In this document: positions 17,936-42,300 of the stretch, piece by piece
Layout: each line of letters begins with the position of its first letter
Position numbering within the stretch: position 1 is the first letter of the stretch
NCBI GenBank assembly: GCA_964057225.1
Contig: OZ059896.1
Coordinates: forward strand, 10,168,001-10,232,000
DNA from: Auanema rhodensis
Taxonomy: Eukaryota; Animalia; Nematoda
Length of the DNA stretch: 64,000 nt
Direction: 5' to 3'
The notes under the pieces: model-generated
Database searches by the model: none
Told to the model about the DNA's origin: nothing
The model's input: only the letters and a program-made list of their open reading frames with translations
Translations under genes and position numbers: made by a program

Positions 17936-20689
17936 TTCTAACTCTTTTTGCTGTCTCAACATATTAATTTCAAGATATAAAAAGCTTTTTTCATATATAT
18001 TGCCAGAGTCTTAGTGGAAAAATATGAAATGTAGCAGAATAAGTTTTACAAAAGAGGACCATGCTCTATTTTAAAGAATAATGAATGAATTATGTCAATC
18101 TTGAATCCATGCTACTTCATGCAAAATATGATTGCAATACATTTTGATTGTAGTTTAATCATTCGGGAAATATATCATAACCATATATAATATTATTATA
18201 TAACTCATTTTATATGGTCCTACAGGGAATATATAAGATATGAATGTAGATTTTTGGCTATGCCGCCAAGCTATCGCCCTTTGTCATCTTTACTGGTTAC
18301 GGCTTCTGGTCCTGCTCATGTTACAATTGCTTAATAGATTGCTTTATGTGAAGCATATGGTCACCAACAAATTTCTGTGCCTCTATCTCTCTATCCTACA
18401 AATATTTTCTTTCTCTCTTTCTCTCTCTCTCTCAGTCTATCTCTCTCAGTCTATCTAGCTATCTCTTCTTTTCAACATTTTATTTAAAAATCTCTCTTTT
18501 TCTTTATATTCATTCTTTTCTAAGGCGGCATTCACTAAATTTGACAGCAGAATTGAAAGAACGAAGGGTGAAAGCTTAAAAAGAAACATGAAATATTCCA
18601 GGATAGTAATATTAGTCAACAGATTTTCATTTTTCAATGAAATGCTATTAGTAGTAATAACAACATGAATAATAAGCAGAAAATGAAGCTTACTGAATTG
18701 TTGTTGATTAATACAGCAAATGGCATTCTTTCATCATCTTCTTCTTCTTTTTTTGAGCAAATATGAGAAGTGAAATGATGAATTTGTTCGACGAAACATA
18801 AATTTTGACCACAATTTCAATTCGTTGTTATCTAAATAAGCCAAATATGCTAAGCATTAGGCTTGAAAGCTCTTTTTATCTCTCACTCGTTTTCTATTTT
18901 CTTTACACGCTTACTAGACTTCCAACTTAACATGCTACGCTTCAGTTTCCATCAAGAAAAAATGGTGATCATGTTTAAACATCGCTTATATACTCCATTC
19001 AGTCAATGTTAGCCAACTCACTTTGTTACTTAGTTAATGAAGAAAAAAATGAAAGGGAGAATTAGATTGAAATATAAACTTTCATCACTTTAATTAGTCA
19101 TATAAAACCAATTAGTTGTTCAAGATTTAATGATTTGAACTACATATATGTATATATGGTAACAATGATTTATATTTGATATCATTTCTTAAATAATTAA
19201 TATATTATTTTCAATTATATAAAAACTTTTATTTTATTCATATATACATACTTACTAGACCCTATTTCTACTACTGCTACTACTACCTCCTTTCACTATC
19301 TTCTTTTGAATCCTTTTGTTTCAAATTTTACATAGTAGCTTAGATTTTGGTCAATAGACTTTTATTATTAGAAATATATATATACATCAATAATGCTAAG
19401 AAAGCATATGTTAAGGAATTTGCAAAAAGTTTTAGAAAAGAAAATATATTGGAGGGGGTAGGGAGAGAATAAACTATAAGAAATAATATTCATATCTATG
19501 TGAAAGATTCCGACATTTGACTTGAATCATCTTCGACTTAAGTCTACATAGTCTAGTCAAAGTTGCCGACTTGAGCAAGTCTAATACTTCTTTACATATG
19601 TATCTAGACTTAACCCTTTGAAAAATGGCTACATACAAGATTCTTCTTCTGTGTTATTCCAGCAGTTTTCATAATATTTCAAAACTAACTGAGAGAAAAT
19701 ACATATGTAAAACCATATATATATATATATATATAAATAACTAAAATATGAAACAACTAGGGAACATTATTTATAATAAACTTTGAATAAAGAAAATCAT
19801 TGAATGAATTCATTGAATTCAATATTCGATATTCAAGGTATGGACGTTATTGGTCACTTGATATGTGGTAAGTCTAGTGGCTTATGTACATTTTTCTGTA
19901 TTAGACAGAAAATTATGTTTATTTTGAATAAAAAAAATGATAAGAATGATATGATGAAAGAAAATATCATGAATTATATGTGTGAATTAATTTGTCAAAT
20001 GCTTTGTCTTTTAATAAAAAATATAATATTATATATACAAAAAGTATGCTAAATGTAGTAGAATATGCTTATTGTTTTACTTTGTGTATCATTAGTTGAT
20101 TTAGATATGTTCAAATATTTGTAGAGTGTTTCTTAATATTATATTTATATAATTAATTTTATATTAATTTTGCAGGGATGAAGATGATAAATGGACTGAT
20201 TTATGTGCGTGTGATCAGCCACTATGCAATACATTTAGCTATTTAAGAGCTCATACAAGGTTTGTAAGATAACGATTATCGTTGACTTTTATTGAAAAAA
20301 TTATAAATTTAAAACTATTTAATATAGTTTTAATTGAATTATCGTAATAATTCATTATTTTTTAATTTATTTTCAGTCAGCAACGTCAAGAAGCACAATT
20401 TGTTCCTGATCCGGATGAAGTTCCATTAGTGTTCAATCGTATGGATCGTACAGATGATGAACCAGCTCCTCCAGCAGCACCAATTTCAACCAGAACTTCA
20501 CTCCTTACTCTATTACTTGTCGTGGTACCTCTAACAGTTGGTGGTGCTACAATTATGGTTTGTTTTAAAATTTCGAATTTTAAATTATTATTTTTTCTCA
20601 AAAAAAAATTTCTAAAGTTTGCTTTTTTTGTTTCACTAACAACAATTTTTCAGGTTGTTGCCTTCAACTACTACTGTCATTTGTGCTAA
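13538..20689 (+). CDS. Single-pass membrane protein with a 10-Cys three-finger (activin-receptor ectodomain/Ly6-like) domain and no kinase domain
   Basis: Exons 13538-13953, 20176-20259, 20377-20557 and 20654-20689 splice in frame. Hydrophobic signal (LILISLLILLFYLPTAES), then CYCTDDHCVPYGACDGTVC...RTCGSHPLGCHRDEDDKWTDLCACDQPLCN, a TM segment (LLTLLLVVVPLTVGGATIMVVAF) and tail NYYCHLC*. The true start Met is uncertain. Confidence 0.8.
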
Positions 20690-21774
20690 TCCTTGGTCTA
20701 TACTTTTAAATTGACACAAAGTTTTAATCAAATATTCATGTACTGGTATGGCTTTCAATGCGGGTCACTTACAGCACCGATATCAACGGCTTTGTGTTTA
20801 TTCTGGTGAATTCTTATGAAACTTCAACAAAAAATATTTTTTTTAAAACACCAAAAGAAGAAGAAACAAATTCTTTTTTTCTATCTCAAGAGTTACAACA
20901 CGTAAGACGTTCAAAACAATTTTTTTAACTCTTCTCGTCTCTTCAAGACTTTTCGAATTATAGCTTCTATATTTACCTTTTCTTTTGTTTAAATTTGTAT
21001 TCATAAAAATATATAATTTTAAATAATATATATTTGTTTTAAAACTTATTATATTTCATCATTTTCAGATATTTTTTTATTTAATGTATGGATGATGTGG
21101 TTCTCTGTATTTCCAATTTATTTACTAACTGAAGCTTTAATACCAAACCATTTGTGCCTTGTTAAATACAATTATACTCCAATCTCTAGATGTATATTGC
21201 TCAGATGGACCAGATATTCTTGAAAACCATGGCAAACGATAATATTTATAATATCAATACTTTTAAGTAAAAAAAACATTATTTTGAATTATTCTTCTGA
21301 AGTTGAAATTATTTTTTTAAATTGTAAATGTTGTATGTTGTAAGTCTTTGTGTTTATAAATCTTTTTTTTCTTGGTTTTCTAAGAAATATTATTTTTCTT
21401 TTATTTTTGGTTTTATACTGAGATTTTAAATGTTTTGTTATTACTCAACTTTACAATATTGAATATGTTTATATATTTAAGTAGATATCATTTCAAAATA
21501 AAATTTTTTTTTTTTAGAAAAAATTTATTTAATTTTTCAACATTTAATAATCTATATTATGCATATAAGCTGAAGGTTCAAGTGTAAGCAGAAGGTTCAA
21601 GAGTCAAGTGCATTGCCCCCCCCCCCTCCGTAATTAACCCCACCAAGCCGTAAGCCCCACCCCTTTTGCCGAATTGGACGCAGTTGCTTAAAAATAAAAT
21701 AAAATAATATACCTTTTTAAAACCATTTTACGTGGTGAAATTGCTGAATTTATGAAATGAATTTAGAATAAATA

Positions 21775-22893
21775 TTAGGTCCCGAACTAAGTCTTGCGCC
21801 CCCCCTAGTGTGACATGAAAAATCAAAAAAAAGTATGAGAGTTGCAAAAAATTTATTAAATACTGTATTGCCCTTTGTTGGCAATAACCTTCTCCCACTT
21901 TTCTTTCAGCTTTCGAATTCCGTTTCTGAAAAATAGTTTACTTTTAGTTGCAAAAAAGATTTTAACAAAATTTTCAACTTCCTCTAAGGTTTTGAAGTTT
22001 TCACCCCTTAAACTATGCTCCATTGATCTAAACAGATGGTAATCTGTTGGAGCAAGATCTGGAGAGTATGGGGGATGCTTCAAAACCGTCCATTTCATGT
22101 CCTGAAGCGTCTGTTGAGCTTTCGCACAACAGTGTGGGCGCGCGTTGTCGTGCAGTAGCGCGATGCTCCTGTTTCTGAGCCCCTCATCAGCTTCAATGGC
22201 AGCATGAAGCTTTCTGAGTTGCTCAGAATAGTAGTTCCCATCTATGGTTCTTCCATAAGGAAGAAGCTCATAGAAAAGAACACCGTTTTCGCTCCAGAAA
22301 ACGGATAGGAGCGCTTTTTTAGGCGTTTGTGGGTTTACCCTGGGGGTCATTGGAACTTCCTGCCCAGGGTTTACCCAAAACTTAAGCCTGTTTGGATTGG
22401 AGTAGAGAATCCACTTCTCGTCTCCAGTTACCAAACTTTTGAAAAAACCCCTTTTTTGGCTCATTTTCAGAAGACCCTGAGCCAAACTTATTCTCGATCT
22501 GAGATTACTCTCAGTCAGAACATGAGGGGAAAAAGGTGAAATTTTATGGATTTTACCCATTTTTTTCAACCTTTTTGAAATAGCAACATCGCTGACTTTC
22601 AGAATGTTTCCCATTTGAAGCTGAGTTGCTCCAGGATTCTCATCCAAAACATTCTGAAGGTCTGCGTTGCCGAATTTCTTACCAGCGCCAGACCTTAGAC
22701 GATCTTTTAAATCGGTTTCGCCCGCTCTAAAACGCGAATATCATCTTTTGCAGGTGCTGTAGTTTGGAGATGAATCTCCATAAACAGCTCTCATTTTTTT
22801 AAAGGGCTGCTTTCGCAGATAATCCTTCATTAAAATGATAAAATTCGAAAAACTAGGGGGGGGGGGGGGCGCAAGACTTAGTTCGGGACCTAA
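21775..22893 (-). mobile_element. Mariner (DD34D) transposon, defective
   Basis: TIR TTAGGTCCCGAACTAAGTCTTGCGCCCCCCC at both ends, with TA TSDs at 21773-21774 and 22894-22895. Length 1119 bp. Confidence 0.95.
21856..22845 (-). pseudogene. Mariner transposase pseudogene
   Basis: TGDEKW, HDNARPH and YSPDLAPTDYHLF are intact with 34 residues between the last two Asp. The N-terminal HTH has a TGA at 22741-22743 (CKR*YSRF) and a +1 frameshift near 22805. The start codon and 5' UTR are missing. Confidence 0.9.
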
Positions 22894-23221
22894 TATATTA
22901 TAATTGAATTTAATCAAAAAAAAATCAAAAAATTCAGAAAAACCTCACACAATTTGTTTATAACTTTGTCTAAGTCTAGTTCACAGATGGTTAATGAAGC
23001 AATGATGAACACAGAAAAAAAATCATATTATCAACATTGATATTCAATTTTGAAATTTATTAATTAAATGATTATATAAATGTATTATGTAGTTTTGTGT
23101 GCTGTTTTTTTTTGCTAATTAATCTTGAACAGCAAAAATGAAAAAGTATGCACCGTTTGGAAAAAAGGGCGGGGCTGACGGCGGGGGAGGGCTGCACTAG
23201 AGCCAAGCTGAATATTCGTAT

Positions 23222-23958
23222 TGTAGTAGTAACAAAGGATAAGGTACAGACTATACTCTACGATCTATATGATCTATGAAATGGTATAAGAGTAAGAAAA
23301 GAGTCCCAATTTAGTCAGTTAGGCTCTCTTGAGACTCAGGTCACTGCTTCTGTTCATTTTTGTTGCAAATTGAACTGATTGTGTTTTATTTTATCTTGTT
23401 ACTGAACTAATATCTAGACTAGAGATTTACCTCTGCAAAATAAAGTCTTATAATAATCAAAAGTTGCTTCAATCAAGGAATAGAACTGAAGAAATAGTGC
23501 GTGCATCATAAGAGAGCATTAAGGGAGAGTTCCAGAATTTTTTTAGAAATTGAAGTTCAGGAGATTGAGGAGATGAAAAGAAACTGTATGGTGCTTCGAC
23601 GAGCAAGTCATGTCCAGGAAGTGGGGGACCAAGTTATCAGTCTGATCAACGAGGCTGTCACAACAGTAAGTTCGTCACTTTATTTGGAATGTCTTAGTTT
23701 GAATATGGAAGAAAGAGTCCCCAGGCTCATTCAAAATGTTAAGTCTGTTGCAAGGGTAAAACAGAGAGAGAATGAGGCGTTGAGAGAAAAAAAACACTTG
23801 GAGAATATGAACTCAGGAAAAAAGGAGGTATTAAAAAAGAACATACAGTGTGAAAAGGTTATTATGTTTTTTGTTGTAAATTGATAGTCTTATCCTATAA
23901 ATTATGATAACCAAAGGTTGCTTCAATCGAGGAATAGAACGGGCTAACAAGCGTCACG
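23222..23958. mobile_element. Probable solo LTR (737 bp)
   Basis: Absent from the paralogous sites in units 2 and 3. Begins TGT and ends TCACG (degenerate ACA), flanked by GTAT direct repeats (23218-23221, 23959-23962). Contains AATAAA near 23438 and an internal ~40-bp repeat (about 23448-23487 and 23902-23940). Confidence 0.6.
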
Positions 23959-24170
23959 GTATATATTTAAAATATTTTCACTTTGTATATCATTTGTTTA
24001 TAACTATGTCTAAGTCTAGTTTACAGATGGTTAATGATGTAATGATGAACACAGAAAATCATATTATCATATGTAATATTCAATTTTGAAATTGATTAAT
24101 TAAATGATTATATAAATGTATTATGTAGTTTTGTGTGCTGTTTTTTTTTTGCAAATTAATCTTGAACACC

Positions 24171-26555
24171 ATGCTAAACTTTCAAAACGAATCAAAACAT
24201 TTAGTCTATAGCATGCTATACGTACAAACCGAAAAATATTTTATGGTTATTTTTTGTATTTAATAAGAGATACCAATATTCCATAAATATATTTTTTTAT
24301 AATTTTGAAGAATTGAATATATACATATATGTGTGTATATGTGTACATAAATCAAATTTTTTCCTTTTATTTTTTCCTTCTTTAGTTTGTATTTTCTTTT
24401 CTTTTGGCAAAAAAGAGAAAGTTTAAATGTAAGTATTTTAACTGTTAGCCTATTACAGACACCTATTATGGAAGCTTATGTTATAATAATGTGGAGTTTA
24501 TCTATATTTGGGTTTATTACATTAATTGTATCGTTATATTTAATATATTCTCGAAATGTAAATGGATTATCAAACGAATTTAAATTTATTATGATAGGAC
24601 AGATTATTGTGTATATTCATTTATATTTAATTATCATTTTATCATTTTTTTTCGTATTTTAAGGGCAAGCGCATCACAAATATGTTTAACAGCTGGTACT
24701 GTTCCGATGATAATTTTACCATGTATGGCAGGTTATCCTATGGGAATACTCACACATTTAGGAATTGATACCTACATGCAGCTCTGTATTCAGATTAGCT
24801 TAATATCTTGTATGAATATAATATTAAATGTAATATTTTTATATTTTAATGAATTAATTATTTTCAGTAAATGCATTCTCTATAAGTTCATTAACTTTAC
24901 ATAGAGCATTTGCTGTTGTTATTAATATTAAAAGAAAATATGAATATATCTCTAAAGGAATTAATTATACACATATAATATTTCAATGTACAGTCTTTCC
25001 TTCTTTATTATCATTATTGACTTTTTTTCATGAAGAAGGTGTTGCTGAATGTCAAAAGGTACAATATCATTGATTAACTATAAGTTTAACTATAAATTTT
25101 AATATATATTTGATTTAGATATATAAAGGACCTATTCCAACTGGTATATATCTAAAAAGAACAATTTTTCTATTTCCTTCAATAGATAAATATACTTTAT
25201 TGTTCGTTTGTGATATTTTCGTTATGATTGTGGTATATACTTCTATATTCATCACAAGCACTCTATTTTTACTTCGAACCCTTGATAAACACAAATCGTC
25301 AGTTGTTTCCCAAAGTATGATGGATCATCAAAAACGAATAACTATATCAATTTTATCTTTGGTTAGTTACTTTCTTCGGCGCTTTTTCCGTTTCTATACC
25401 CCCCGTCTTAAGCCCCGCCCCTTTTACCGTTTGGCACATACTTTTATTAAAATGTGATACCTATGTGAGATACGGTGGTATCCAGATATCCACAAATGTT
25501 CCATTTTTTTTAGAATATCCCTTCTACAGTCTTTTATGGTACATCTCCACTTATTTCGAGCAAAAGAAAGACTCATTTTTCGTTAACATCGTTCACATTC
25601 GTTAGTCTCAAAGACTATACCTTTTTCTTGCAAGAATTGAATGGCATCAGCTTCAGTAAGAAGCCGTTCTTTTGGAGCAAACATTTAGACGAAAAATGGT
25701 TGATAATGTATATGCAATAACCAATAATGATTCAGTTCTTATATCATAATATATTCAAGGTTTATTACACTTATTATAGATATCCCCATAGGGGGGGAAA
25801 CCCCCCCCCCAAACCCCCCCGTTTTAGGAAGGGAAGCCGAATGGTAGAAAAGTATGCGCCCAACGGTAAAAGGGGCGGGGCTAAAATCGGGGGGTATAGA
25901 AACGGAAAAAGAACCCTTTCTTCTAATAGTCATTCATTTCATATACTAACTATACTTATTTATTTATTTATTTGTCTTTACAAGAGAATCAAATGATATT
26001 TTTAATTTTCATTTTATTCATTTAAAATTTTATTATTATTATTAATTTTTAGGCTTTTGTAGAAATAATAGGCGTATTTATACCTGCATTTTGGATTATG
26101 TTTGCAACTCTTACTGAGATACCATATCCAAGTAATATTTTAATTTTTTATAATATTTATTAAAAAATATTAATTATCTAAACGGTTGTATGTACGTAAT
26201 ACGTAATACTACGTATACTACGTATATATACATATAATTTTTCTAACTATTAGTACCAGTTAATAGATGATGTTTTTGAAGATTTAATTAAAATTATTTT
26301 AAAATAAACTAATTATAAAAATCATATACATATCTTTAAATCTTTTTTCCCAATTTGTTTTTTAGTAATCACCAAACTTTCATTTTTGTGTTTGGCTATT
26401 GCTCCGATTTTAGGATGTACTATTCTCATTGGAGGTACACCTGCATATGCAAATGAATTTCGAAAACTTATCGCAAAAGGTTAATTTATCCTATTTGAAA
26501 AATTTTTATTTTCAAATTTATACTTCTAGTATACCCTAAAACGAGTGGAAAATAG
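24171..26555 (+). CDS. Serpentine 7TM chemoreceptor, Srh/Sri (Str superfamily), copy 1; 8 exons, ORF intact
   Basis: Spliced protein MLNFQNESKHLVYSMLY-TPIMEAYVIIMWSLSIFGFITLIVSLYLIY...LPCMAGYPMGILTHLGIDTYMQ...HRAFAV...SQSMMDHQKRITISILSL-AFVEIIGVFIPAF...GGTPAYANEFRKLIAKVYPKTSGK*. Seven hydrophobic segments; the P..AGYP.G.L..LG motif is typical of Srh/Sri. Confidence 0.85.
25378..25915 (-). mobile_element. Merlin (IS1595/IS1016-related) internal-deletion derivative in chemoreceptor intron 5
   Basis: 8-bp TSD CTTTCTTC (25370-25377, 25916-25923); single copy at the empty sites in units 2 and 3. ~70-bp TIRs start with GG. The minus strand from ATG 25684 reads MFAPKERLLTEADAIQFLQEKGIVFETNECERC*RKMSLSFARNKWRCTIKDC, the zinc-ribbon N-terminus of Merlin transposases. 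Confidence 0.88.
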
Positions 26556-27349
26556 TCAATTATATTTTATAAAATTGGTATTTAACTACTTTCATAGCCT
26601 GGAGTAGGTTGCTCTTACGATAATTTCCATATCAATTCCGTATTAATATTAATATTATGATTATGTGATAATAATGATTTTTAACATCAAAAACAGCTAT
26701 AACTGTTGTTCTTCATCTTTCTTATTTTTATTTTTCTCCGTTTTGCTCGAATATACATACTAACCATGACTATGATATAGCTATGATTTGGGTTTTGTGT
26801 TTGTATATACTGAGAAAGGCTATGATTTGAGATCTGTCAACCAAAATGTTGTTGTTGAATATTAATCAAAATATTATGTTGTAAATGAAAAATGAATAAG
26901 ATGAAATGTATATATATATACTAATATACTATATGTATATTTAATTATTTATTTATAGTTAATAAATGCTATATCACTTCGTTCCTCATGGCTCGACCAA
27001 TATATACAAACAGACAAATAATAGAGAAAATGATAAAATGTTAAAATGAACCGGGCTTTGACCAAAAAAATGAAAATTGAATGATTTGTAGGAAAAAAGT
27101 AGTTTTTTTTTGTGAATTTTCTTGTCCACATGTTTTTTTCTGTGTTTGTGAAGATCATTTAAAAGCTGTCAGAATGTAACCGGCCACCCTAAGATGAGCA
27201 CATGTTCGTAGAACACAGTATGACTGTTCGTATATGCTATTCGATGCACTCGTTTTTTGGACTGGTTTTTATGTAGATATTGGGTATGTATTGATGAACA
27301 AGATTGCGAAGTTGAGGAAAGGGAGAGAGGAAAGCGATTATAACAATGC

Positions 27350-30300
27350 TTAAATGAGTTAAAAAAGATTATAAATGAGCAAGAACATTCAAAATTAAAG
27401 AAGAAATTCATATTAATAGAAAGACAAATTGATATTCTTTTACCTGATTGCTCAGCAGATAGCCTACAGAACGATGAAGAAACTGAAGAGGAGATATCTT
27501 CCGCGTACCCATCAAAATGTGAAAGTGAAAATGTTAATGATAATCAAAGAAAACCTTGAAAAAATTTCTAAAAAAAGGTACGAACAGAGATTTTTTGAAA
27601 ATAGAATTGATATAATGATGAAAAAAGTAAACGAATTGAAGAAAAAAAATTGAGCGATATTGAATATAATATTGGCATAAGAAAACAAAAACCAAAAACC
27701 TGCAATATATCAGAAAGCAATGATGATTTGAGAGAATATAACATGTTTTCACGGACAAAAATCATTTTACATAACTTTGATAGAGATATAGCAGAATTTT
27801 TTAAATTCATTTTCGGCTCATTTTCTTCTTATTATTCAGAGAACTTTAATTATTCTGTTAAAATTTTGAGCCAGCGCATTAGCATAAGCATGCGCCACAG
27901 AGGAGGGTGGTGGCAACTACTAAACAAGCGCCTTGAATTTTATTATATAAATACAAAATTTAATCCTGCAGACTTACCTACAAGAGGTATAGAGATTCAG
28001 GACGTAGTATATGAAGCCTGGATCAAAGGTCCGCATTGGAATGTGGAAGAAAAGGAAAGAAATAAGAGAAAGTATTGTGATGAACCAGAACAAAAAATAA
28101 ATTTGAATTTGAATTTTAATCTGTTAACCAAATCTGATATCAGACATAGAAGATTTAGATCATTTAGGTAGTAAATTTTCTTCTTATTCAAAATTTACAA
28201 ACATTACTCGACAAATAATTACTTCTATAACTAGAATCAGAGGGAAACTTAATCTAATTAAAGAAACTATGTTTGAAGATATTGAGAACAGAGATATTAT
28301 GACTGAAAATAAAATTATTCAACTGATATTATTAAGGATGAACTCGGTATTTCGAGAGTGAGAGGTCGCATTAGCAACTCAGAACCAGAAAATAAAAAGT
28401 ATCCAACATTGCTTTTTTGAAAAAAGATTTTCACAAAATTATTTTTGAACTATATGCACGAAATATTTCTTCATGCACCAAAAGAAACTTTAATGGCTAG
28501 AAAAGAATTTTTCATATTCAAATTTAAATCATGGATTAATACAGTTATTCATTTTTGTGTTGAATGCAAAAAATTAAATTACAGACCATACAAATATCCG
28601 AATTTCCCACAATTACCAAAAGAAAAAGTTACTAAGTTCAAACCTTTCGAAAATATCAGAATTGATTATGCAGGACCACTGATAATCGAAACAGAAACTA
28701 ATTCTAATAAAAAAGTATGGATCATACTAATTACTTGCCTCTGTGCAAGAGCAGTATACTTAGATTTAGCCAATGATAGCTCAAGCAAACAATTAAAATT
28801 GAATCTCAGAAAGTTTTTTGCTTGTAAAAGAGTATCATCAAAAATAATATCAGACAACGGAAGTCAGTTTTCAAAAACTGACAAAATTTTGAAAGAGTTT
28901 CTAGAAAATAAGCTAATCAAATGGGAAATTACAACTCCCTACTCTCCATGAATAGATGGGTTTTATGAAAGGATGATTGGTGTAACTAAGAAATATTTGA
29001 TTAAATCAATAGGAACCAGAAAAATAGAGTATAATAAACTCTACACAGTGCTAATAGAGATAGAAAACATATTAATCGAAGACCTCTTTCATACATGAAA
29101 GGCGATTTTGACAAGATAATAACACCCAAAAGTTTGGAATTTTATCATCCCGATAACATCATTCGCGAGTTTTCAAAAACAGGAAATGAAGGTAACTTGA
29201 ATAATTTTTTGGGTAGTCTTGCCTACCACTGGATGAACTGAGAACTGTTTCAAATCAAAAATCCTCAAATAAAAACTTCAATAAAACAAAGCCTAAAATA
29301 GGCGAAATAGTATCATGCATGAACAATAATGTCAAAAGACACAAATAATCTATGGCCCTGATAGAGAGAACTTATTGTTTCTAAAGATAGCAATGTTAGA
29401 ACAGTTAAAATTAGAAATTCATAAAAGTAAAAGATTCCTGAGATCCATAAACCAGTTAATATCTAAGGAAATATCAGAAAATTTGACTGAGTCAGAAGAA
29501 AATGAAATTCCCTTCGAACAATCTTTGTTAAATAATCATGACAACATTACTACCAGTGAGATCGATGAAAGGCTCAGAAATAATAGGAAAATTGATTATA
29601 AAAATTTTTTTAAACTTTTCTCACTTGATATATTTGAGTAATTAAATATGATTTATTCCAAAAAAATAAATAAATAAGAGTTATAAAACAGTTTTTGGTT
29701 TTTTGTTTGGGGTGGAGGATTCACGCTATGCAAACGCCTCACGTGAAAGACACGTAAACGTAAAGAGTATATGAACTGCCTCGATTCATGAAAAAGTTCA
29801 TTCTCTACAATGTCACAACAAGCGGTGATGAACGATTATGAAGAATTATTGGCAAAAAAAAAGCTGAAACGACTCCGACAAAAAGATAGAAACTGAACTT
29901 GAATCCGTAAATAATAGACTTGCTTTTTTGGAAAAAAAGTGTTGTTACCATTTGTGAACTTCTTCAAGAAATGAAAGATAGTGAGAAATTAAACTGTAAT
30001 TTTACCGTAAACCCGATTTATTTAACTGAATGGAATTAAGAAAAAGGTGAAGCTTGAAGCTAAACAAAGGGAATGTTCCAAATCTAAATTGTGTGATCAG
30101 AATCATCAAACTGAAAAATGTTCAAACCATCCCACTAAGATTGCAAAGTTTACGAAAAGAGAGAAATTAAATATTTAAAATGTTGCGTTTGAAAAATATA
30201 ATATTTTGTATTCGAAGGCGGAATGTTTTGTGAATAACACCAAAAAGTAAAACTATTTACACGGTTTTCTCAAATCAGTAAAAGGTAAACAAACAATTTT

Positions 30301-31482: not shown

Positions 31483-31630
31483 GGCTCTAGTGCAGTCGTA
31501 AGACATACCTTTCAGAACGGAGGTTGGGGGGAGTTTTTTTTCACGTAAAATGGTTTTAAAAAGTTATATTATTTAATTTTTAAGCAACTGTGTGCACTTC
31601 GGCAAAAGGAGCGGGGCTTACGTCTTGGGA
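31483..31630. mobile_element. Truncated Merlin-like MITE at duplication junction 1
   Basis: Starts GGCTCTAGTGCAG (the terminus of the 21575-23204 element) and continues as the reverse complement of about 21640-21735. The right end is lost in a deletion. Confidence 0.75.
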
Positions 31631-31920
31631 GAATTTTTTTTTTTAGAAAAAATTTATTTAATTTTTCAACATTTAATAATCTATATTATGCATATAAGCT
31701 GAATATTCGTATATATTTAAAATATTTTCACTTTGTATATCATTTGTTTATAACTATGTCTAAGTCTAGTTTACAGATGGTTAATGATGTAATGATGAAC
31801 ACAGAAAATCATATTATCATATGTAATATTCAATTTTGAAATTGATTAATTAAATGATTATATAAATGTATTATGTAGTTTTGTGTGCTGTTTTTTTTTT
31901 GCAAATTAATCTTGAACACC

Positions 31921-33752
31921 ATGCTAAACTTGAAGAGGATCAAAAAACATTTAGTCTATAGCATGCTATACGTACAAACCGAAAAATATTTTATGGTTAT
32001 TTTTTGTATTTAATAAGAGATACCAATATTCCATAAATATATTTTTTTATAATTTTGAAGAATTGAATATATACATATATGTGTGTATATGTGTACATAA
32101 ATCAAATTTTTTCCTTTTATTTTTTCCTTCTTTAGTTTGTATTTTCTTTTCTTTTGGCAAAAAAGAGAAAGTTTAAATGTAAGTATTTTAACTGTTAGCC
32201 TATTACAGACACCTATTATGGAAGCTTATGTTATAATAATGTGGAGTTTATCTATATTTGGGTTTATTACATTAATTGTATCGTTATATTTAATATATCC
32301 TCGAAATGTAAATGGATTATCAAACGAATTTAAATTTATTATGATAGGACAGATTATTGTGTATATTCATTTATATTTAATTATCATTTTATCATTTTGT
32401 TTCGTATTTTAAGGGCAAGCGCATCACAAATATGTTTAACAGCTGGTACTGTTCCGATGATAATTTTACCATGTATGGCAGGTTATCCTATGGGAATACT
32501 CACACATTTAGGAATTGATACCTACATGCAGCTCTGTATTCAGATTAGCTTAATATCTTGTATGAATATAATATTAAATGTAATATTTTTATATTTTAAT
32601 GAATTAATTATTTTCAGTAAATGGATTCTTTATATGTTCATTAACTTTACATAGAGCATTAGCTGTTGTTATTAATATTAAAAGAAAATATGAATATATC
32701 TCTAAAGGAATTAATTATACACATATAATATTTCAATGTACAGTCTTTCCTTCTTTATTATCATTATTGACTTTTTTTCATGAAGAAGGTGTTGCTGAAT
32801 GTGAAAAGGTACAATATCATTGATTAACTATAAGTTTAATTATAAGTTTTAATATATATTTGATTTAGATATATAAAGGACCTATTCCAACTGGTATATA
32901 TCTAAAAAGCACAATTTTTCTATTTCCTTCATTAGATAAATATACTTTATTGTTCGTTTGTGATGCTTTCGTTATGATTGCGGTTTTCAGTTCAATATTC
33001 ACAACAAGCACTTTATATTTACTTCAAACCCTTGGTAAACACAAATCGTCAGTTGTTTCCCAAAGTAGGATGGATCATCAAAAACGAATAACTATATCAA
33101 TTTTATCTTTGGTTAGTTACTTTCTTCTAATAGTCATTCATTTCATATACTAACTATACTTATTTATTTATTTATTTGTCTTTACAAGAGAATCAAATGA
33201 TATTTTTAATTTTCATTTTATTCATTTAAAATTTTATTATTATTATTAATTTTTAGGCTTTTGTAGAAATAATAGGCTTATTTATACCTGCATTTTGGAT
33301 TATGTTTGCAAGTCTTACTGAGTTACCATATCCAAGTAATATTTTAATTTTTTATAATATTTATTAAAAAATATTAATTATCTAAACGGTTGTATGTACG
33401 TAATACGTAATACTACGTATATATACATATAATTTTTCTAACTATTAGTACCAGTTAATAGATGATGTTTTTGAAGATTTAATTAAAATTATTTTAAAAT
33501 AAACTAATTATAAAAATCATATACATATCTTTAAATCTTTTTTTTCCCAATTTGTTTTTTAGTAATCACCAAACTTTCATTTTTGTGTTTGGCTATTGCT
33601 CCGATTTTAGGATGTACTATTCTCATTGGAGGTACACCTGCATATGCAAATGAATTTCGAAAACTTATCGCAAAAGGTTAATTTATCCTATTTGAAAAAT
33701 TTTTATTTTCAAATTTATACTTCTAGTATACCCTAAAACGAGTGGAAAATAG
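31921..33752 (+). CDS. Srh-type chemoreceptor copy 2 (apparent chimera of copies 3 and 1), ORF intact
   Basis: Same 8-exon structure as copy 1; starts MLNLKRIKKHLVYSMLY and ends VYPKTSGK*. Confidence 0.85.
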
Positions 33753-34667
33753 TCAATTATATTTTATAAAATTGGTATTTAACTACTTTCATACACTGGA
33801 TTATGTAGCTCTTAACCATAACTATGATATAGCTATGATTTGAGTTTTGTGTTTGAGCAGGTTGGCGCTTGATTTGAGATCTGTCAACCAAAATGTTGTT
33901 GTTGAATATTAATCAAAACATTATGTTATAAATGAAAAATGAATAAGATGAAATATATATATATATACTAATATACTATATGTATATTTAATTATTTATT
34001 TATAGTTAATATATGCTACATCACTTCGTTCCTCATGGCTCGACCAATATATACAAACAGATAAATAATAGAGAAAATGATAAAATGTTAAAATGAACCG
34101 GGCTTTGACCAAAAAAATGAAAATTGAATGATTTGTAGGAAAAAAGTAGTTTTTTTTTGTGAATTTTCTTGTCCACATGTTTTTTTCTGTGTTTGTGAAG
34201 ATCATTTAAAAGCTGTCAGAATGTAACCGGCCACCCTAAGATGAGCACATGTTCGTAGAACACAGTATGACTGTTCGTATATGCTATTCGATGCACTCGT
34301 TTTTTGGACTGGTTTTTATGTAGATATTAGGTATGTATTGATGAACAAGATTGCGAAGTTGAGGAAAGGGAGAGAGGAAAGCGATTATAACGATGCTGCT
34401 CTATTTTCCTTATATAATAAACTCAAATACTAAAAAAAGAGAGAAAGAGATGGAGATAGAGAGAAAGAAAGGGCAAAAGCGAAAATGAAAGAGATCGGAG
34501 AAACTGGAGATAATAAGGTATTACGCCAGTGAAGAAATAAGAGTAGGAAGAACAAAAAATGTTGAAATAATGGGTTGTGTGACGAACTGTGGAGATTGCA
34601 TTTTCCTTTTATGTTTTGGCGAAGCTTCAGGTGAGCTAAGAAGTCTTGTTTGCCCTGCGCCGCTAGT

Positions 34668-35437: not shown

Positions 35438-35843
35438 GATAAATGGACTGATGGCTCTAGTGCAGTCGTAAGACATACCTTTCAGAACGGAGGTTGGGGG
35501 GAGTTTTTTTTCACGTAAAATGGTTTTAAAAAGTTATATTATTTAATTTTTAAGCAACTGTGTGCACTTCGGCAAAAGGAGCGAGGCTTACGTCTTGGGA
35601 GCGTTAATTACGGGGGGAGGATGAAACTGCACTGAAACTGAGCCACTATGCAATACATTTAACTATTTAAGGGCTCATACAAGGTTTGTAAGATAACGAT
35701 TATCGTTGACTTTTATTGAAAAAATTATAAATTTATAACTATTTAATATAGTTTTAATTGAATTATCGTAATAATTCATTATTTTTTAATTTATTTTCAG
35801 TCAGCAACGTCAAGAAGCACAATTTGTTCCTGATCCGGATGAA
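35438..35843 (+). pseudogene. Duplicated, disrupted exon 2-3 fragment of the three-finger gene
   Basis: Matches 20186-20419, interrupted by a MITE and followed by a ~330-bp deletion removing the TM-coding part and last exon. Confidence 0.85.
35453..35644. mobile_element. Merlin-like MITE (~190 bp) at duplication junction 2
   Basis: GGCTCTAGTGCAG...CTGCACTGAAACTGAGCC; same family as 21575-23204 in inverted orientation. No clean TSD; adjacent exon bases are deleted. Confidence 0.75.
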
Positions 35844-37012
35844 GCTTTCAATGCGGGTCACTCACAGCACCGATATCAACGGCTTGGTCTTTATTCTGGT
35901 GAATTCTTATGAAACTTCAACAAAAAATAAAGAAAATACAAATTATAACAATATTATATTTATTATTATTTTAAAAATAAAGAAAACAACTTTGAATAAA
36001 AATAAAATAATATGTTATTTAAGAATAATTTCTAAATACATTTACATATAATTACTGTTTTCTGAAACATCAAAAGAAGAAGAAACAAATTCTTTTTTTC
36101 TATCTCAAGAGTTACAACACGTAAGACGTTCAAAACAATTTTTTTAACTCTTCTCGTCTCTTCAAGACTTTTCGAATTATAGCTTCTATATTTACCTTTT
36201 CTTTTGTTTAAATTTGTATTCATAAAAATATATAATTTTAAATAATATATATTTGTTTTAAAACTTATTATATTTCATCATTTTCAGATATTTTTTTATT
36301 TAATGTATGGATGATGTGGTTCTCTGTATTTCCAATTTATTTACTAACTGAAGCTTTAATACCAAACCATTTGTGCCTTGTTAAATACAATTATATTCCA
36401 ATCTCTAGATGTATATTGCTCAGATGGACCAGATATTCTTGAAAACCATGGCAAACGATAATATTTATAATATCAATACTTTTAAGTAAAAAAAACATTA
36501 TTTTGAATTATTCTTCTGAAGTTGAAATTATTTTTTTAAATTGTAAATGTTGTATGTTGTAAGTCTTTGTGTTTATAAATCTTTTTTTTTCTTGGTTTTC
36601 TAAGAAATATTATTTTTCTTTTATTTTTGGTTTTATACTGAGATTTTAAATGTTTTGTTATTACTCAACTTTACAATATTGAATATGTTTATATATTTAA
36701 GTAGATATCATTTCAAAATAAAATTTTTTTTTTTTTAGAAAAAATTTATTTAATTTTTCAACATTTAATAATCTATATTATGCATATAAGCTGAATATTC
36801 GTATATATTTAAAATATTTTCACTTTGTATATCATTTGTTTATAACTATGTCTAAGTCTAGTTTACAGATGGTTAATGATGTAATGATGAACACAGAAAA
36901 TCATATTATCATGTGTAATATTCAATTTTGAAATTGATTAATTAAATGATTATATAAATGTATTATGTAGTTTTGTGTGCTGTTTTTTTTTTGCAAATTA
37001 ATCTTGAACACC

Positions 37013-38847
37013 ATGCTAAACTTGAAGAGGATCAAAAAACATTTAGTCTATAGCATGCTATACGTACAAACCGAAAAATATTTTATGGTTATTTTTTGTA
37101 TTTAATAAGAGATACCAATATTCCATAAATATATTTTTTTATAATTTTGAAGAATTGAATATATACATATATGTGTGTATATGTGTACATAAATCAAATT
37201 TGTTTCCTTTTATTTTTTCCTTCTTTAGTTTGTATTTTCTTTTCTTTTGGCTAAAAAGAGAAAGTTTAAATGTAAGTATTTTAACTGTTAGCCTATTACA
37301 GACACCTATTATGGAAGCTTATGTTATAATAATGTGGAGTTTATCTATATTTGGGTTTATTACATTAATTGTATCGTTATATTTAATATATCCTCGAAAT
37401 GTAAATGGATTATCAAACGAATTTAAATTTATTATGATAGGACAGATTATTGTGTATATTCATTTATATTTAATTATCATTTTATCATTTTTTTTCGTAT
37501 TTTAAGGGCAAGCGCATCACAAATATGTTTAACAGCTGGTACTGTTCCGATGATAATTTTACCATGTATGGCAGGTTATCCTATGGGAATACTCACACAT
37601 TTAGGAATTGATACCTACATGCAGCTCTGTATTCAGATTAGCTTAATATCTTGTATGAATATAATATTAAATGTAATATTTTTATATTTTAATGAATTAA
37701 TTATTTTCAGTAAATGGATTCTTTATATGTTCATTAACTTTATATAGAGCATTAGCTGTTGTTATTAATATTAAAAGAAAATATGAATATATCTCTAAAG
37801 GAATTAATTATACACATATAATATTTCAATGTACAGTCTTTCCTTCTTTATTTTCTTTAGTAACTTTTTTTCGTGAAGAAGGTGTTGCTGAATGTCAAAA
37901 GGTACAATATCATTGAATAAGTTTAACTATAAATTTTAATATATATTTGATTTAGATATATAAAGGACCTATTCCAACTGGTATATATCTAAAAAGAACA
38001 ATTTTTCTATTTCCTTCAATAGATAAATATACTTTATTCGCTGCTTATGATATTATCCTTATGCTTGTTATATATTCTTCTATATTCACAACAAGCACTC
38101 TATATTTACTTCAAACCCTTGGTAAGCACAAATCGACAATTGTCTCCCAAAGTAGGATGGATCTTCAAAAACGAATAACTATATCAATTTTATCTTTGGT
38201 TAGTTTCTTTCTTCTAATAGTCATTCATTTCATATGCTAACTATACTTATTTATTTATTTATTTGTCTTTACAAGAGAATCAAATGATATTTTTAATTTT
38301 CATTTTATTCATTTAAAATTTTATTATTATTATTAATTTTTAGGCTATTGTAGAAATAATAGGCGTATTTATACCTGCATTTTGGATTATGTTTGCAACT
38401 CTTACTGAGATACCATATCCAAGTAATATTTTAATTTTTTATAATATTTATTAAAAAATATTAATTATCTAAACGGTTGTATGTACGTAAAACGTAATAC
38501 TACGTATACTACGTATATATACATATAATTTTTCTAACTATTAGTACCAGTTAATAGATGATGTTTTTGAAGATTTAATTAAATTATTTTAAAATAAACT
38601 AATTATAAAAATCATATACATATCTTTAAATCTTTTTTTTACCAATTTGTTTTTTAGTAATCACCAAACTTTCATTTTTGTGTTTGGCTATTGCTCCGAT
38701 TTTAGGATGTACTATTCTCATTAGAGGTACACCTGCATATGCAAATGAATTTCGAAAACTTATCGCCAAAGGTTAATTTATCCTATTTGAAAAATTTTTT
38801 TTTTCAAATTCGTACTTTTAGTTTTTCCTAAATTCCGTGGAAAATAG
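37013..38847 (+). CDS. Srh-type chemoreceptor copy 3, ORF intact
   Basis: Same 8-exon structure; TM5 region reads YTLFAAYDIILMLVIYSSIF and the protein ends VFPKFRGK*. Confidence 0.85.
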
Positions 38848-39378
38848 TCAATTATATTTTATAAAATTGGTATTTAACTACTTTCATAGCCTGGAGTAGG
38901 TTGCTCTTACGATAATTTCCATATCAATTCCGTATTAATATTAATATTATGATTATGTGATAATAATGATTTTTAACATCAAAAACAGCTATAACTGTTG
39001 TTCTTCATCTTTTTTATTTTTCTTTTTCTCCGTTTTGCTCGAATATACATACTAACCATGACTATGATATAGCTATGATTTGGGTTTTGTGTTTGTATAT
39101 ACTGAGAAAGGCTATGATTTGAGATCTGTCAACCAAAATGTTGTTGTTGAATATTAATCAAAATATTATGTTGTAAATGAAAAATGAATAAGATGAAATG
39201 TATATATATATACTAATATACTATATGTATATTTAATTATTTATTTATAGTTAATAAATGCTATATCACTTCGTTCCTCATGGCTCGACCAATATATACA
39301 AACAGACAAATAATAGAGAAAATGATCACAAATTGATTCAATATTTAGCCGGGCTTTGACTAAGTATGAATGGTACAC

Positions 39379-42300
39379 TTAAGCACGCTTGGACTTCTTG
39401 CGGAAATAACAGCAAACCATGCACTGAAAAAAATGAAAATTGAATGATTTGTAGGAAAAAAGTAGTTTTTTTCTGAATTTTCTTGTCCACATGTTTTTTC
39501 TGTGTTTGTGAAGATCATTTAAAAGCTGTCAGAATGTAACCGGCCACCCTAAGATGAGCACATGTTCGTAGAACACAGTATGACTGTTCGTATATGCTAT
39601 TCGATGCACTCGTTTTTTGGACTGGTTTTTATGTAGATATTGGGTATGTATTGATGAACAAGATTGCGAAGTTGAGGAAAGGGGAGAGAGGAAAGCGATT
39701 ATAACGATGCTGCTCTATTTTCCTTATATAATAAACTCAAATACTAAAAAAAGAGAGAAAGAGATGGAGATAGAGAGAAAGAAAGGGCAAAAGCGAAAAT
39801 GAAAGAGATCGGAGAAACTGGAGATAATAAGGTATTACGCCAGTGAAGAAATAAGAGTAGGAAGAACAAAAAATGTTGAAATAATGGGTTGTGTGACGAA
39901 CTGTGGAGATTGCATTTTCCTTTTATGTTTTGGCGAAGCTTCAGGTGAGCTAAGAAGTCTTGTTTGCCCTACGCCGCTAGTCCGTCAAGACCATTCAACA
40001 CTAAGTTTGGAAGAGAAAAAAAGATTGTGAATGAGGAATACATGAAAGAACAAGCGTTATATATAAAAAGATGAACAAAAAACGAAGATGACATGGGCTG
40101 TGACGATTGTCCGTTAAATTTGATTTCTGGTGGTCCGAACAAAACAGCATTGTATTTTTTGAATTCAACGTTTTTCGGCGATATACAGCAGAAAGAAAGG
40201 TGCAAAAAACAGAACGTTAAACCAGAAGTATAGAGTATCCAATTAGAAAAATATGTCTTTAAAAAGATATTTATTTATTTTACCTGATTTCCATTGTTTT
40301 GTCCTACTTGACAGACAGATTGTCCAGGGCATTGGTAATTTTGGTTGCATGATCCAATTTGAACACCTCCAGTACATCCACAAGCACTGTTTTGTGGAGC
40401 CTGCAGAAGCATGCATGATTGAAACTGTACTTGTTAACGATATACCTGAGTGCTAACATATGGAGCAGGGGTTGGGAGATTTCCTGGAGTTCCTTGAGTA
40501 TCCCACACGCAAACTTGAGCTTGGACATCGAATACGGTAGCTGGAGCACATGGCATGCGTTGCCAGCGTCCGCAGAAGAGATTGTTTGGAGCTGGTTGGC
40601 ATTGAAGGTAGTGAGAACGAGATTGGGGATCAACAGCTAATGGATCAACCATCCATGAGCAGATTCCTTGATATTGTGCGTTCTGAACACCTTGTCCTTG
40701 TACTACAAATATAAAACGTGTTATTTGAATGAGACGCGTGAAACAATACCAAGGGGGCAAGCTTGTGGCTGAACAACAGCTGGTTGTTGCTGTGGGCAGT
40801 ATTGTTGCTGTGTGGTGGTGGTCTGGCAGTTCTTAAAATATATTCATGAGAATCTTCCGGAAGAGTGGATTAATTACAATCTGAGGAGGAGCTTGTTGAC
40901 ACTGGCATGGCTGGGAAGCTTGAGTTTGAGTGTTGCAACATTGGGTAGATGCAAGGACCTGCTCGTTCTGAGAGTTCGTAGTAACACAGGTACAAGCTGG
41001 CTGAGCAGATGGGCAAGGACAAGACTGATATTGAGAGAATTGGATTCTCTGAAAAAAAAGTATTTTTGAATGAAATTTGCATCGAGATTCTTACAGTTGT
41101 AGTAGCCTGTGGAGAGCGACGAACTTTTCCTGAGTTGATAGGGATGTTCACTGGCTCAAGAATTTCTGGTGAGGGGCAAACACAGTTGCTTTCACCATTT
41201 GGACAGGCACATTGACGAGGAGCTTCACGAATTTCTTCTACGAGAAACTGAACAGAAAATATTATATGTATAGTTAGAAGATCATATTAACCTGTGTAGC
41301 ACGATTCTCACTAGGACAGAACTGGTAGCTGGTTGCATTTCCGGAGTCGCAAAGTTCTTGTTGACGATTAACGGAACGAATGGTTTTGCAGCGACGGGAT
41401 GAGGCAACGAATTCATATCCAGGAAGGCATTCACGAAGAAGCCAAATACCAAGATCTTTTCTGTAGAATGTATAAGATTAGAAAGATCAGAAAGAAGTGA
41501 AAACAAAATTTAAAATAAAGTTAGTAAGAATTGGATGGCTATTTTTTTGGCTACTAGTTTTGTGTTATTTGAGTTTGCTGTCCGCAGTCTTTGAGCACTT
41601 CTAATATCCAACTAGTTTTGCTATTTGGCGAAAAGTTTTAAAACATTATTTTGAAAATCAAATTTAGCAAAATTAATTGTTTGCCCTAATTGGCTAAAAA
41701 AACGCAATCGAAGGTACGATCATATTTCTTGTTCAGAGCTGTTGCAGCAGAAACGTTTCTGTTCGTTCTCTCTTTGCTTTTTTCGGAAAACAACTGTTCT
41801 AAGCTAGTCTTAACCACATAAAGTCATCGCCGATTGTGTTTTGGAGGCGAAAGACATGGGCGGATAAGAACAAAATAAGATGAAAAACGAGAAGAAAGCA
41901 GCTGATTTCTATCCATTAAAACACTTTTACATGTTTCTCTTATTCCGTAGAATATATTGGTGATCTTTGAGCGCGAACTATCGTGAGCAATCAAACTAAA
42001 AGGACAAAATGCTAAGGTCCTTCATTTTGATCAGATCATGAAGCTCTTTAAAATTTCAACAAAGCATCTGTGAGCAGCAATAAGGGCTCGTGGTCATTGT
42101 CAGATAAGTGTACTCAATTAGCTTTTCTCAGATTATATACGTGGCTGCGCAATGATTGAACGATACTATGATCTTCTTGAATTTGTTTGATCTTCATCTT
42201 GTATGATCCATCATCAATTGCATTAAATTTCACCCCGAACCCTTATTTATATCTTGAAATCTGTTCTGAAGCATCATTCTTACATGAAGGGTACTCATCG

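Follow-up and report, generated by a model that had tools for sequence, protein, structure and literature searches.

Transposons with terminal inverted repeats (TIRs) that have captured host DNA are now documented in animals as well as in plants. A catalogue of 100 animal genomes, worm cases included, contains 370 such Pack-TIRs (Tan et al. 2021, PMC8277862); hAT and Tc/mariner elements account for 87% of the cases in its main text, and Merlin is never named there (PMC8277862). Single-copy Pack-TIRs are explained by transposition-independent gap filling with template switching, and 57% of them lie within 15 kb of the parent sequence, mostly within less than 5 kb, with a median gap of 4.6% of the element, while multicopy Pack-TIRs lie far from their parents (PMC8277862). 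The Pack-MULE, Pack-CACTA, and Pack-TYPE elements of plants are non-autonomous TIR elements with target-site duplications (TSDs), host DNA, and an autonomous relative in the genome; exon fragments are their typical content, they are often multicopy, and movement has been observed (PMC8903248, PMC6379663). In Caenorhabditis elegans, polymerase-theta end joining acts on transposon breaks, and its inserts are templated nearby; these come with small deletions and are identical to the neighbouring sequence (PMC4490562). Finally, P-element homing by regulatory fragments is on record as a measured bias of engineered P vectors (PMC3261919).

The present study describes a Merlin element that holds a copy of the DNA just 5′ of chemoreceptor (srh) genes and lies directly upstream of the first of three such genes. 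It resembles the single-copy Pack-TIRs in copy number, distance from the parent, gap size (~85 of 1,257 bp), and orientation. It differs from them in that the host is a Merlin, the captured piece is 5′ intergenic DNA up to the start codon, the parent was merely 46 bp away, and the copy is more diverged than the flanks of the element, which the simple model does not predict. It has the architecture of the plant Pack elements, but its host DNA is non-coding and it exists in a single copy. A 26-nt copy at its left end fits the polymerase-theta inserts well (sequence near a break copied into the junction), whereas a 183-bp piece at 91% identity falls outside their range. Like a homing P element, it is a transposon with regulatory DNA adjoining the source gene; however, it represents one natural event for which there is a simpler explanation. 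The first-pass annotation of this DNA, which proposed a Pack-type Merlin, knew of no such system, a view superseded by the animal Pack-TIR catalogue (PMC8277862), to which the present case adds the Merlin superfamily.

Results

One Insertion into a Known Empty Site Upstream of a Tandem srh Array

The window, the whole 64,000-nucleotide stretch that was analysed, lies on contig C4 (10.168-10.232 Mb) in a nematode genome of 181 Mb. It contains three tandem srh gene copies, at ~23.96-27.35 kb (copy 1), 31.7-34.4 kb (copy 2), and 36.8-39.7 kb (copy 3). Exons of the array match the Pfam family 7TM_GPCR_Srh (E 7e-07 and 0.004 on copy 2), as scanned one exon at a time and with no spliced model joined. 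Divergence across the copies (23959-27350, 31634-34397, and 36058-39711) is mosaic: most 100-bp windows contain 0-1 differences and short patches contain 10-19. One patch in copy 1 is a length-preserving stretch of 21 nt directly 3′ of the ATG, and another patch in the array lies within a transmembrane-coding exon. Copy 1 is nearer to copies 2 and 3 than these are to one another, and yet over 689 bp copies 2 and 3 have flanks with 100% identity.

Upstream of copy 1, a single insertion, at a site known in its empty state, makes up 21575-23204: the segment is bounded by perfect 8-bp TSDs (8/8), and the paralogous site is unfilled. Specifically, AAGCTGAA can be read from the sequence on both sides of the element, at 21567-21574 and 23205-23212, while upstream of copies 2 and 3 the sequence runs continuously through a single AAGCTGAA (31696-31703 and 36788-36795). 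The alternative that the two ends belong to independent insertions, which the first-pass annotation had put forward as a way in which its proposal might fail, does not hold. The 736 bp to the left of the element differ from the DNA upstream of srh copy 3 by four substitutions (99.2% identity by BLAST).

The Merlin with its cargo is not an assembly artefact, because public contigs, from the runs of three studies, match all of its junctions. With no differences, these contigs span the left junction (21545-21717), the junction of mariner and cargo (22867-23088), and, at 23084-23988/24149, the stretch that leads from the cargo via the right end to the native promoter. All of them derive from DNA, and none of the public runs listed for the region is recorded as RNA. 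The only joint in these contigs that might mark a Merlin-less allele runs from 21574 to 23959, with TATTC between; it was rejected as an allele, because it corresponds to the empty site in the paralogous copies 2 and 3. Within 22930-23030, contigs of runs X9 and X10 match ~60-100 bases and have unrelated sequence on both sides; the match could be to a related fragment elsewhere, or a chance A-rich one.

A second insertion, of 737 bp (23222-23958, plus strand), is present in copy 1 only and missing in copies 2 and 3. It has GTAT duplicated on both sides, starts 9 bp past the Merlin TSD, and now parts the Merlin from the native promoter. Related sequence, 71-85% identical, occurs in a segment at C8:26.590-26.594 Mb and at a few other loci, and the insertion has the look of foreign DNA arriving for a second time at the same spot. 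Exon-like open frames and an internal repeat of ~140 bp occur within it. A strain lacking the Merlin and having the 737-bp insertion was sought in the public contigs and none was found.

The Element Belongs to the Merlin Superfamily

The hallmarks of Merlin elements are an 8-bp (8- or 9-bp) TSD, 5′-GG ends, and an IS1595-type DDE transposase (Feschotte 2004, summarised in PMC8101967). Membership of 21575-23204 in this superfamily is confirmed, because its ends recur on a 1,257-bp relative that codes for a DDE transposase of the IS1595/Merlin type. This autonomous copy (L005; TSD AAATTAAT) has the GG ends of 21575-23204, and its segment L005:1692-2186, on the minus strand, matches DDE_Tnp_IS1595 (PF12762) with E 6.2e-18 and 65.7 bits (cutoff 27); the protein is intron-split, with recognisable EIDET, SDCW, and NTIEGVW motifs. 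The TIRs of 21575-23204 open with 5′-GG, the left as GGTTCAAGTG and the right, in reverse complement, as GGCTCTAGTGCAG, and the autonomous copy has the same termini. Both TIR motifs quoted in the first-pass annotation are thus present, the one as this reverse-complemented right end and the other, AAAAGGGCGGGGCT, at 23164-23177, and its description of a single, TSD-bounded, non-autonomous Merlin is upheld by the 8-bp TSDs, the GG termini, and the relative with a DDE_Tnp_IS1595 domain. The right terminus, CTGCACTAGAGCC, has an exact match at 19 places in the genome. Pairing of termini gave at least 10 independent family insertions, all with 8-bp TSDs; TSDs of this length flank the nine other family insertions found in a terminus scan and also a 538-bp MITE at 25378-25915. 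In total, 8-bp duplications and GG ends are seen in eleven TSD-bounded insertions.

Members of the family range from MITEs of ~210-350 bp up to elements of 1,257-1,283 bp. Copies of the 1,257-bp type are 97-99% identical among themselves, and the family has therefore been active recently. The TSD length, the GG ends, and the IS1595-type DDE domain of the autonomous member are those of the superfamily; departures from it are that 21575-23204 has no transposase and that L005 has a weak, sub-threshold zinc-ribbon match. The latter lies in the first exon (L005:2392-2619, minus strand; Zn_ribbon_IS1595, E 0.004, under the Pfam cutoff), and Merlin elements are said to lack the IS1595 zinc ribbon (PMC8101967). 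Elsewhere in the genome, eight 1,265-bp Merlin copies (L009-L017) lie within 55 kb at C1:18.735-18.790 Mb. All eight share the TSD TCCATGTA, so that at this place an element-bearing locus has been amplified segmentally and not via transposition.

An Internal-Deletion Derivative with a Nested Mariner

The element is a non-autonomous, internal-deletion derivative that contains a nested mariner and no transposase of Merlin type. Its left arm (21575-21772, plus strand) starts with GGTTCAAGTG and includes the subterminal motif AGCCCCACCCCTTTTGCC. This arm is 83-87% identical to other family members, including two in the window (35512-35620 and 31542-31628) and the non-autonomous element L034, its nearest relative (87% over 153 bp), and it also aligns with the autonomous 1,257-bp copy (positions 19-89). 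A 26-nt imperfect copy of the junction between flank and TIR (21585-21610, plus strand; TAAGCAGAA GGTTCAAGAG TCAAGTG) breaks the left terminal repeat, and dropping these 26 nt restores the canonical Merlin start, GGTTCAAGTGCA. Such a junction copy could only arise at the present site; it is plausibly an insert templated during polymerase-theta end joining.

To the right of this arm lies the mariner, 1,119 bp in length (21775-22893, minus strand), with perfect 34-nt terminal repeats and a TA on either side (21773-21774 and 22894-22895). Its open frame of 294 codons (21859-22740) matches Pfam Transposase_1 with E 1.6e-19, and it is 98% identical to 1.3-kb copies elsewhere, with a 189-bp deletion and 18 private substitutions. 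Merlin sequence resumes at 22896-22943 (plus strand) with an internal remnant that corresponds to the DNA just past the transposase stop codon of the autonomous copy; it aligns with positions 1069-1107 of that copy, and with L007/L023 up to ...AAATTCAGAAAAAC. The 183-bp cargo follows at 22952-23134 (plus strand), in native orientation and facing out of the right end. Six junction bases, AAAATG (23135-23140), separate it from the right arm (23141-23204, plus strand), which ends in CTGCACTAGAGCC and shares 82-90% identity with at least 20 family ends across the genome. The GG termini and a subterminal motif of the GCCCCGCCCCTTTT type are kept on both arms.

The Cargo Derives from the Resident srh Locus

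In a search of the whole genome (E ~1e-65), the cargo matches its native counterpart 5′ of srh copy 1 (23992-24171, plus strand, upstream of the putative start ATG at 24172) and the equivalents at 31742-31921 (copy 2) and 36834-37013 (copy 3). The labels "promoter" and "receptor ATG" for these features are placed by position only, and an ATG at 24469 is a second candidate for the srh start. When cargo and native sequence are aligned globally, 169 positions match, 9 are substituted, and 7 gap columns fall into 4 indels, an AAAA insertion among them; identity is 91.4% with gaps counted and 94.9% with gaps excluded. Among the three srh genes the native copies differ by 0-1 bases (99.5-100% identity over 213 bp). 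The first-pass annotation was therefore right that the element encloses a copy of the ~180 bp before the receptor ATG, and right that this copy is more diverged than the tandem promoters are mutually. The homology stops at ...TTGAACA(G/C)CA, immediately before the ATG, and includes no coding sequence. A deaminase- or RIP-like origin of the differences was considered and rejected, as transversions and transitions are mixed without bias.

Four copies of the cargo sequence occur in the 181-Mb genome: the three that are native and the cargo itself. When either the cargo or the native 512-bp 5′ region was used to search the whole genome, no further donor paralogue came up, and genome-wide there is no second Merlin carrying the 183-bp piece. 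Because no other homologue exists in the 181 Mb, the donor lineage is the present srh locus. The earlier suggestion of capture from another paralogue fails, as these searches return only the three adjacent promoters and the cargo.

Before the 737-bp insertion, the parent of the cargo started 38 bp past the TSD and 46 bp from the end of the element; the distance is now 787 bp. Within the element, the cargo replaced ~85 bp of homopolymer-rich Merlin DNA that all relatives keep (of 1,257 bp). At the corresponding position in four relatives are ~85-110 bp of mostly G, A, and C runs, the lengths of which vary from copy to copy; comparison with these four relatives gave no clear microhomology at either cargo junction.

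The locus accordingly has the structure of a Pack-type element: non-transposon DNA lies between both arms of one TIR element, within one TSD, and a parental copy exists outside transposons, upstream of the three srh genes. It holds no exon fragments, the capture of which defines a Pack-MULE in the strict sense, and the cargo-bearing element is single copy, whereas mobilisation after capture is seen as several copies with different TSDs. The Pack-type interpretation of the first-pass annotation therefore survives as a description, that of a carrier of a promoter copy, but not as capture from another paralogue or as a system that moves promoters. The proposal that the element may move chemoreceptor regulatory DNA is, in particular, unsupported: the cargo-bearing element is single copy and lies 46 bp (now 787 bp) from the parent.

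A Sister Element Contains Satellite Filler

The nearest relative of the left arm, L034 (C5:11.96 Mb, TSD AAAATCTT), is a non-autonomous Merlin that likewise holds host DNA, in this case 3.6 units of a 176-bp satellite (L034:1598-2563). A lack of host cargo in all other family members was the first half of a refuting condition set in the first-pass annotation, and L034 supplies such a cargo-bearing member. A further satellite-bearing copy, of 2.6 units (L034:6821-7610), lies 5 kb away. A history in which L034 had transposed twice was rejected, since TSD and flanks are shared by both copies, which marks the second as a segmental duplicate. Large arrays of the 176-bp satellite are found elsewhere, on contigs C80-C84 and at C5:22.3 Mb, C4:5.1 Mb, and C3:24.0 Mb, and the 48 kb sampled around L034 yielded no satellite. 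The filler adjoins the same homopolymer tract as the cargo site. The Merlin family thus does acquire filler at this tract, and a filler-bearing member may have moved.

Discussion

How the Cargo Was Acquired

On balance, we favor a model in which the cargo arose by gap filling in cis, as a single-copy Pack-TIR repair scar left by a local template switch and not as a member of a promoter-carrying family. We infer the mechanism and its timing as follows. A Merlin deletion derivative, itself later the target of a mariner, inserted into the 5′ region of the first of the three tandem srh genes. A break would then have arisen in the unstable homopolymer stretch close to the right end of the Merlin, and during its repair the extending strand would have switched to the srh upstream DNA, dozens of bases away on the same or the paired chromatid, as template. 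Some 183 bases would have been copied as far as the ATG before the right arm was rejoined, at the cost of ~85 bp of element DNA. Several observations are consistent with this course of events. The parent lies in direct orientation, as expected of a left broken end extended rightwards on a misaligned template. The replaced segment is small and coincides with the tract of variable runs, which the filler of L034 also abuts. In addition, the 26-nt copy of the TSD/TIR junction is a second local, imperfect copy, at the left end. A single local gap-repair event had been named in the first-pass annotation as an outcome that would refute its proposal; it has become the leading explanation, although the divergence of the cargo keeps a mobile element under consideration.

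That divergence is a difficulty for local repair. The cargo is ~5% substituted (9/178) and has 4 indels, whereas the flanks differ from the empty sites by 0.5%; taken at face value, the cargo thus predates the insertion, which speaks for capture before transposition. No faithful copy made at the site can account for this gap, and an in-place origin then needs either conversion of both flanks up to the insertion or a diverged template outside the assembly. Two routes would reconcile repair with the data. In the first, the event would be older than the homogenised flanks imply, the array being mosaic through gene conversion; in the second, the template would have been a diverged allele or a neighbouring copy since lost. 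Because the srh copies are mosaic and their history is not tree-like, flank identity is a poor clock, and the flanks of the insertion may have been homogenised. We considered the nested mariner as a clock (18 private substitutions vs 0-3 in the others) and rejected it, as in a cut-and-paste system private changes date a lineage and not its arrival. Two further points count against local repair, namely the lack of clear microhomology and the satellite filler of L034, which has no array within the 48 kb sampled.

A mobile Pack-type Merlin is a possibility that we advance tentatively. Such an element would have captured the fragment from an ancestor of the srh promoters, or from a lost neighbour, and would then have transposed at least once with its cargo, in a local hop; its landing upstream of copy 1 would postdate the tandem copies, and the mariner was perhaps carried along. 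A cargo with ~5% divergence and 4 indels between flanks at 0.5% and a perfect TSD is what this history would leave. A recent source of transposase existed in the form of intact autonomous copies that are 97-99% identical, both arms retain the GG termini and the GCCCCGCCCCTTTT-type subterminal motif, and L034 bears 3.6 satellite units although the 48 kb sampled around it contain no array. However, the cargo-bearing element is the only one in the genome, its left terminal repeat is broken by the 26-nt duplication, and it lay 46 bp from the sole homologues of its cargo in 181 Mb, in direct orientation, so that strong local hopping or promoter targeting would be required. The second copy of L034, with its shared TSD, is a segmental duplicate and not a second transposition, and the multicopy Pack-TIRs that have transposed in other animals sit far from their parents (PMC8277862).

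Promoter targeting could in principle be provided by homing, if the cargo were to bind the factors of the native promoter and thereby tether the transposition complex there, an idea that we consider highly improbable. The position of a cargo-bearing element 46 bp from the only homologues in the genome would be in keeping with it, and there is the precedent of P elements that home by means of regulatory fragments (PMC3261919). But only one event is at hand, templating in cis gives the same proximity with no new mechanism, homing is not known for Merlin, and the binding of factors by the cargo is purely hypothetical. There is correspondingly little chance that the element is a natural promoter carrier, one that transposed after capture and was guided to within 46 bp of its cognate promoter by factors bound to the fragment. 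The reverse direction, in which the 180 bp would be Merlin sequence and the srh "promoters" old transposon fragments, is scarcely credible, for although Merlin-type MITEs lie near the promoters of copies 2 and 3 (31483-31633 and 35453-35644), the 180 bp are missing from all other family members examined, that position is taken in all relatives by another segment, conserved and ~85 bp long, and just four copies of the sequence exist genome-wide.

Implications

The locus provides a fully bounded case of host-DNA capture by a Merlin in a nematode, with the empty site, an autonomous relative, and a filler-bearing sister in one genome, and it points to a specific, fragile homopolymer tract as the entry point of filler. 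If the cargo travelled with the element, then transposons can carry short regulatory DNA of a fast-evolving chemoreceptor family, with a bearing on the diversification of receptor expression patterns. A guided promoter carrier, if real, would be a natural counterpart of P-element homing and would give the native srh promoter a second, outward-facing partner in tandem. The functional significance of the putative promoter cargo is unproven and probably small, because there is one copy, adjoining its parent, and expression from the cargo is purely putative; srh copy 1 is in any case interrupted by another MITE.

Other Repeats in the Window

The MITE in question (25378-25915) is 538 bp long, of Merlin type, with terminal repeats of ~68 bp and the TSD CTTTCTTC. 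It interrupts a coding exon of srh copy 1 and is missing in copies 2 and 3; because it sits in a coding exon, copy 1 is probably a pseudogene. Contig depth indicates that this MITE family is high-copy. A 192-bp member of the same Merlin-type family, with no recognisable TSD, lies upstream of srh copy 3 (35453-35644), and its counterpart at copy 2 (31483-31633) has been shortened by a 1.1-kb deletion. All that copy 1 has at the corresponding position is 20 bp (20201-20220, TTATGTGCGTGTGATCAGCC), which finish with the last bases of the MITE and may represent an excision footprint. Further along the window, a tandem repeat at 55522-56924 consists of units of ~340-350 bp that are 85-93% identical to one another.
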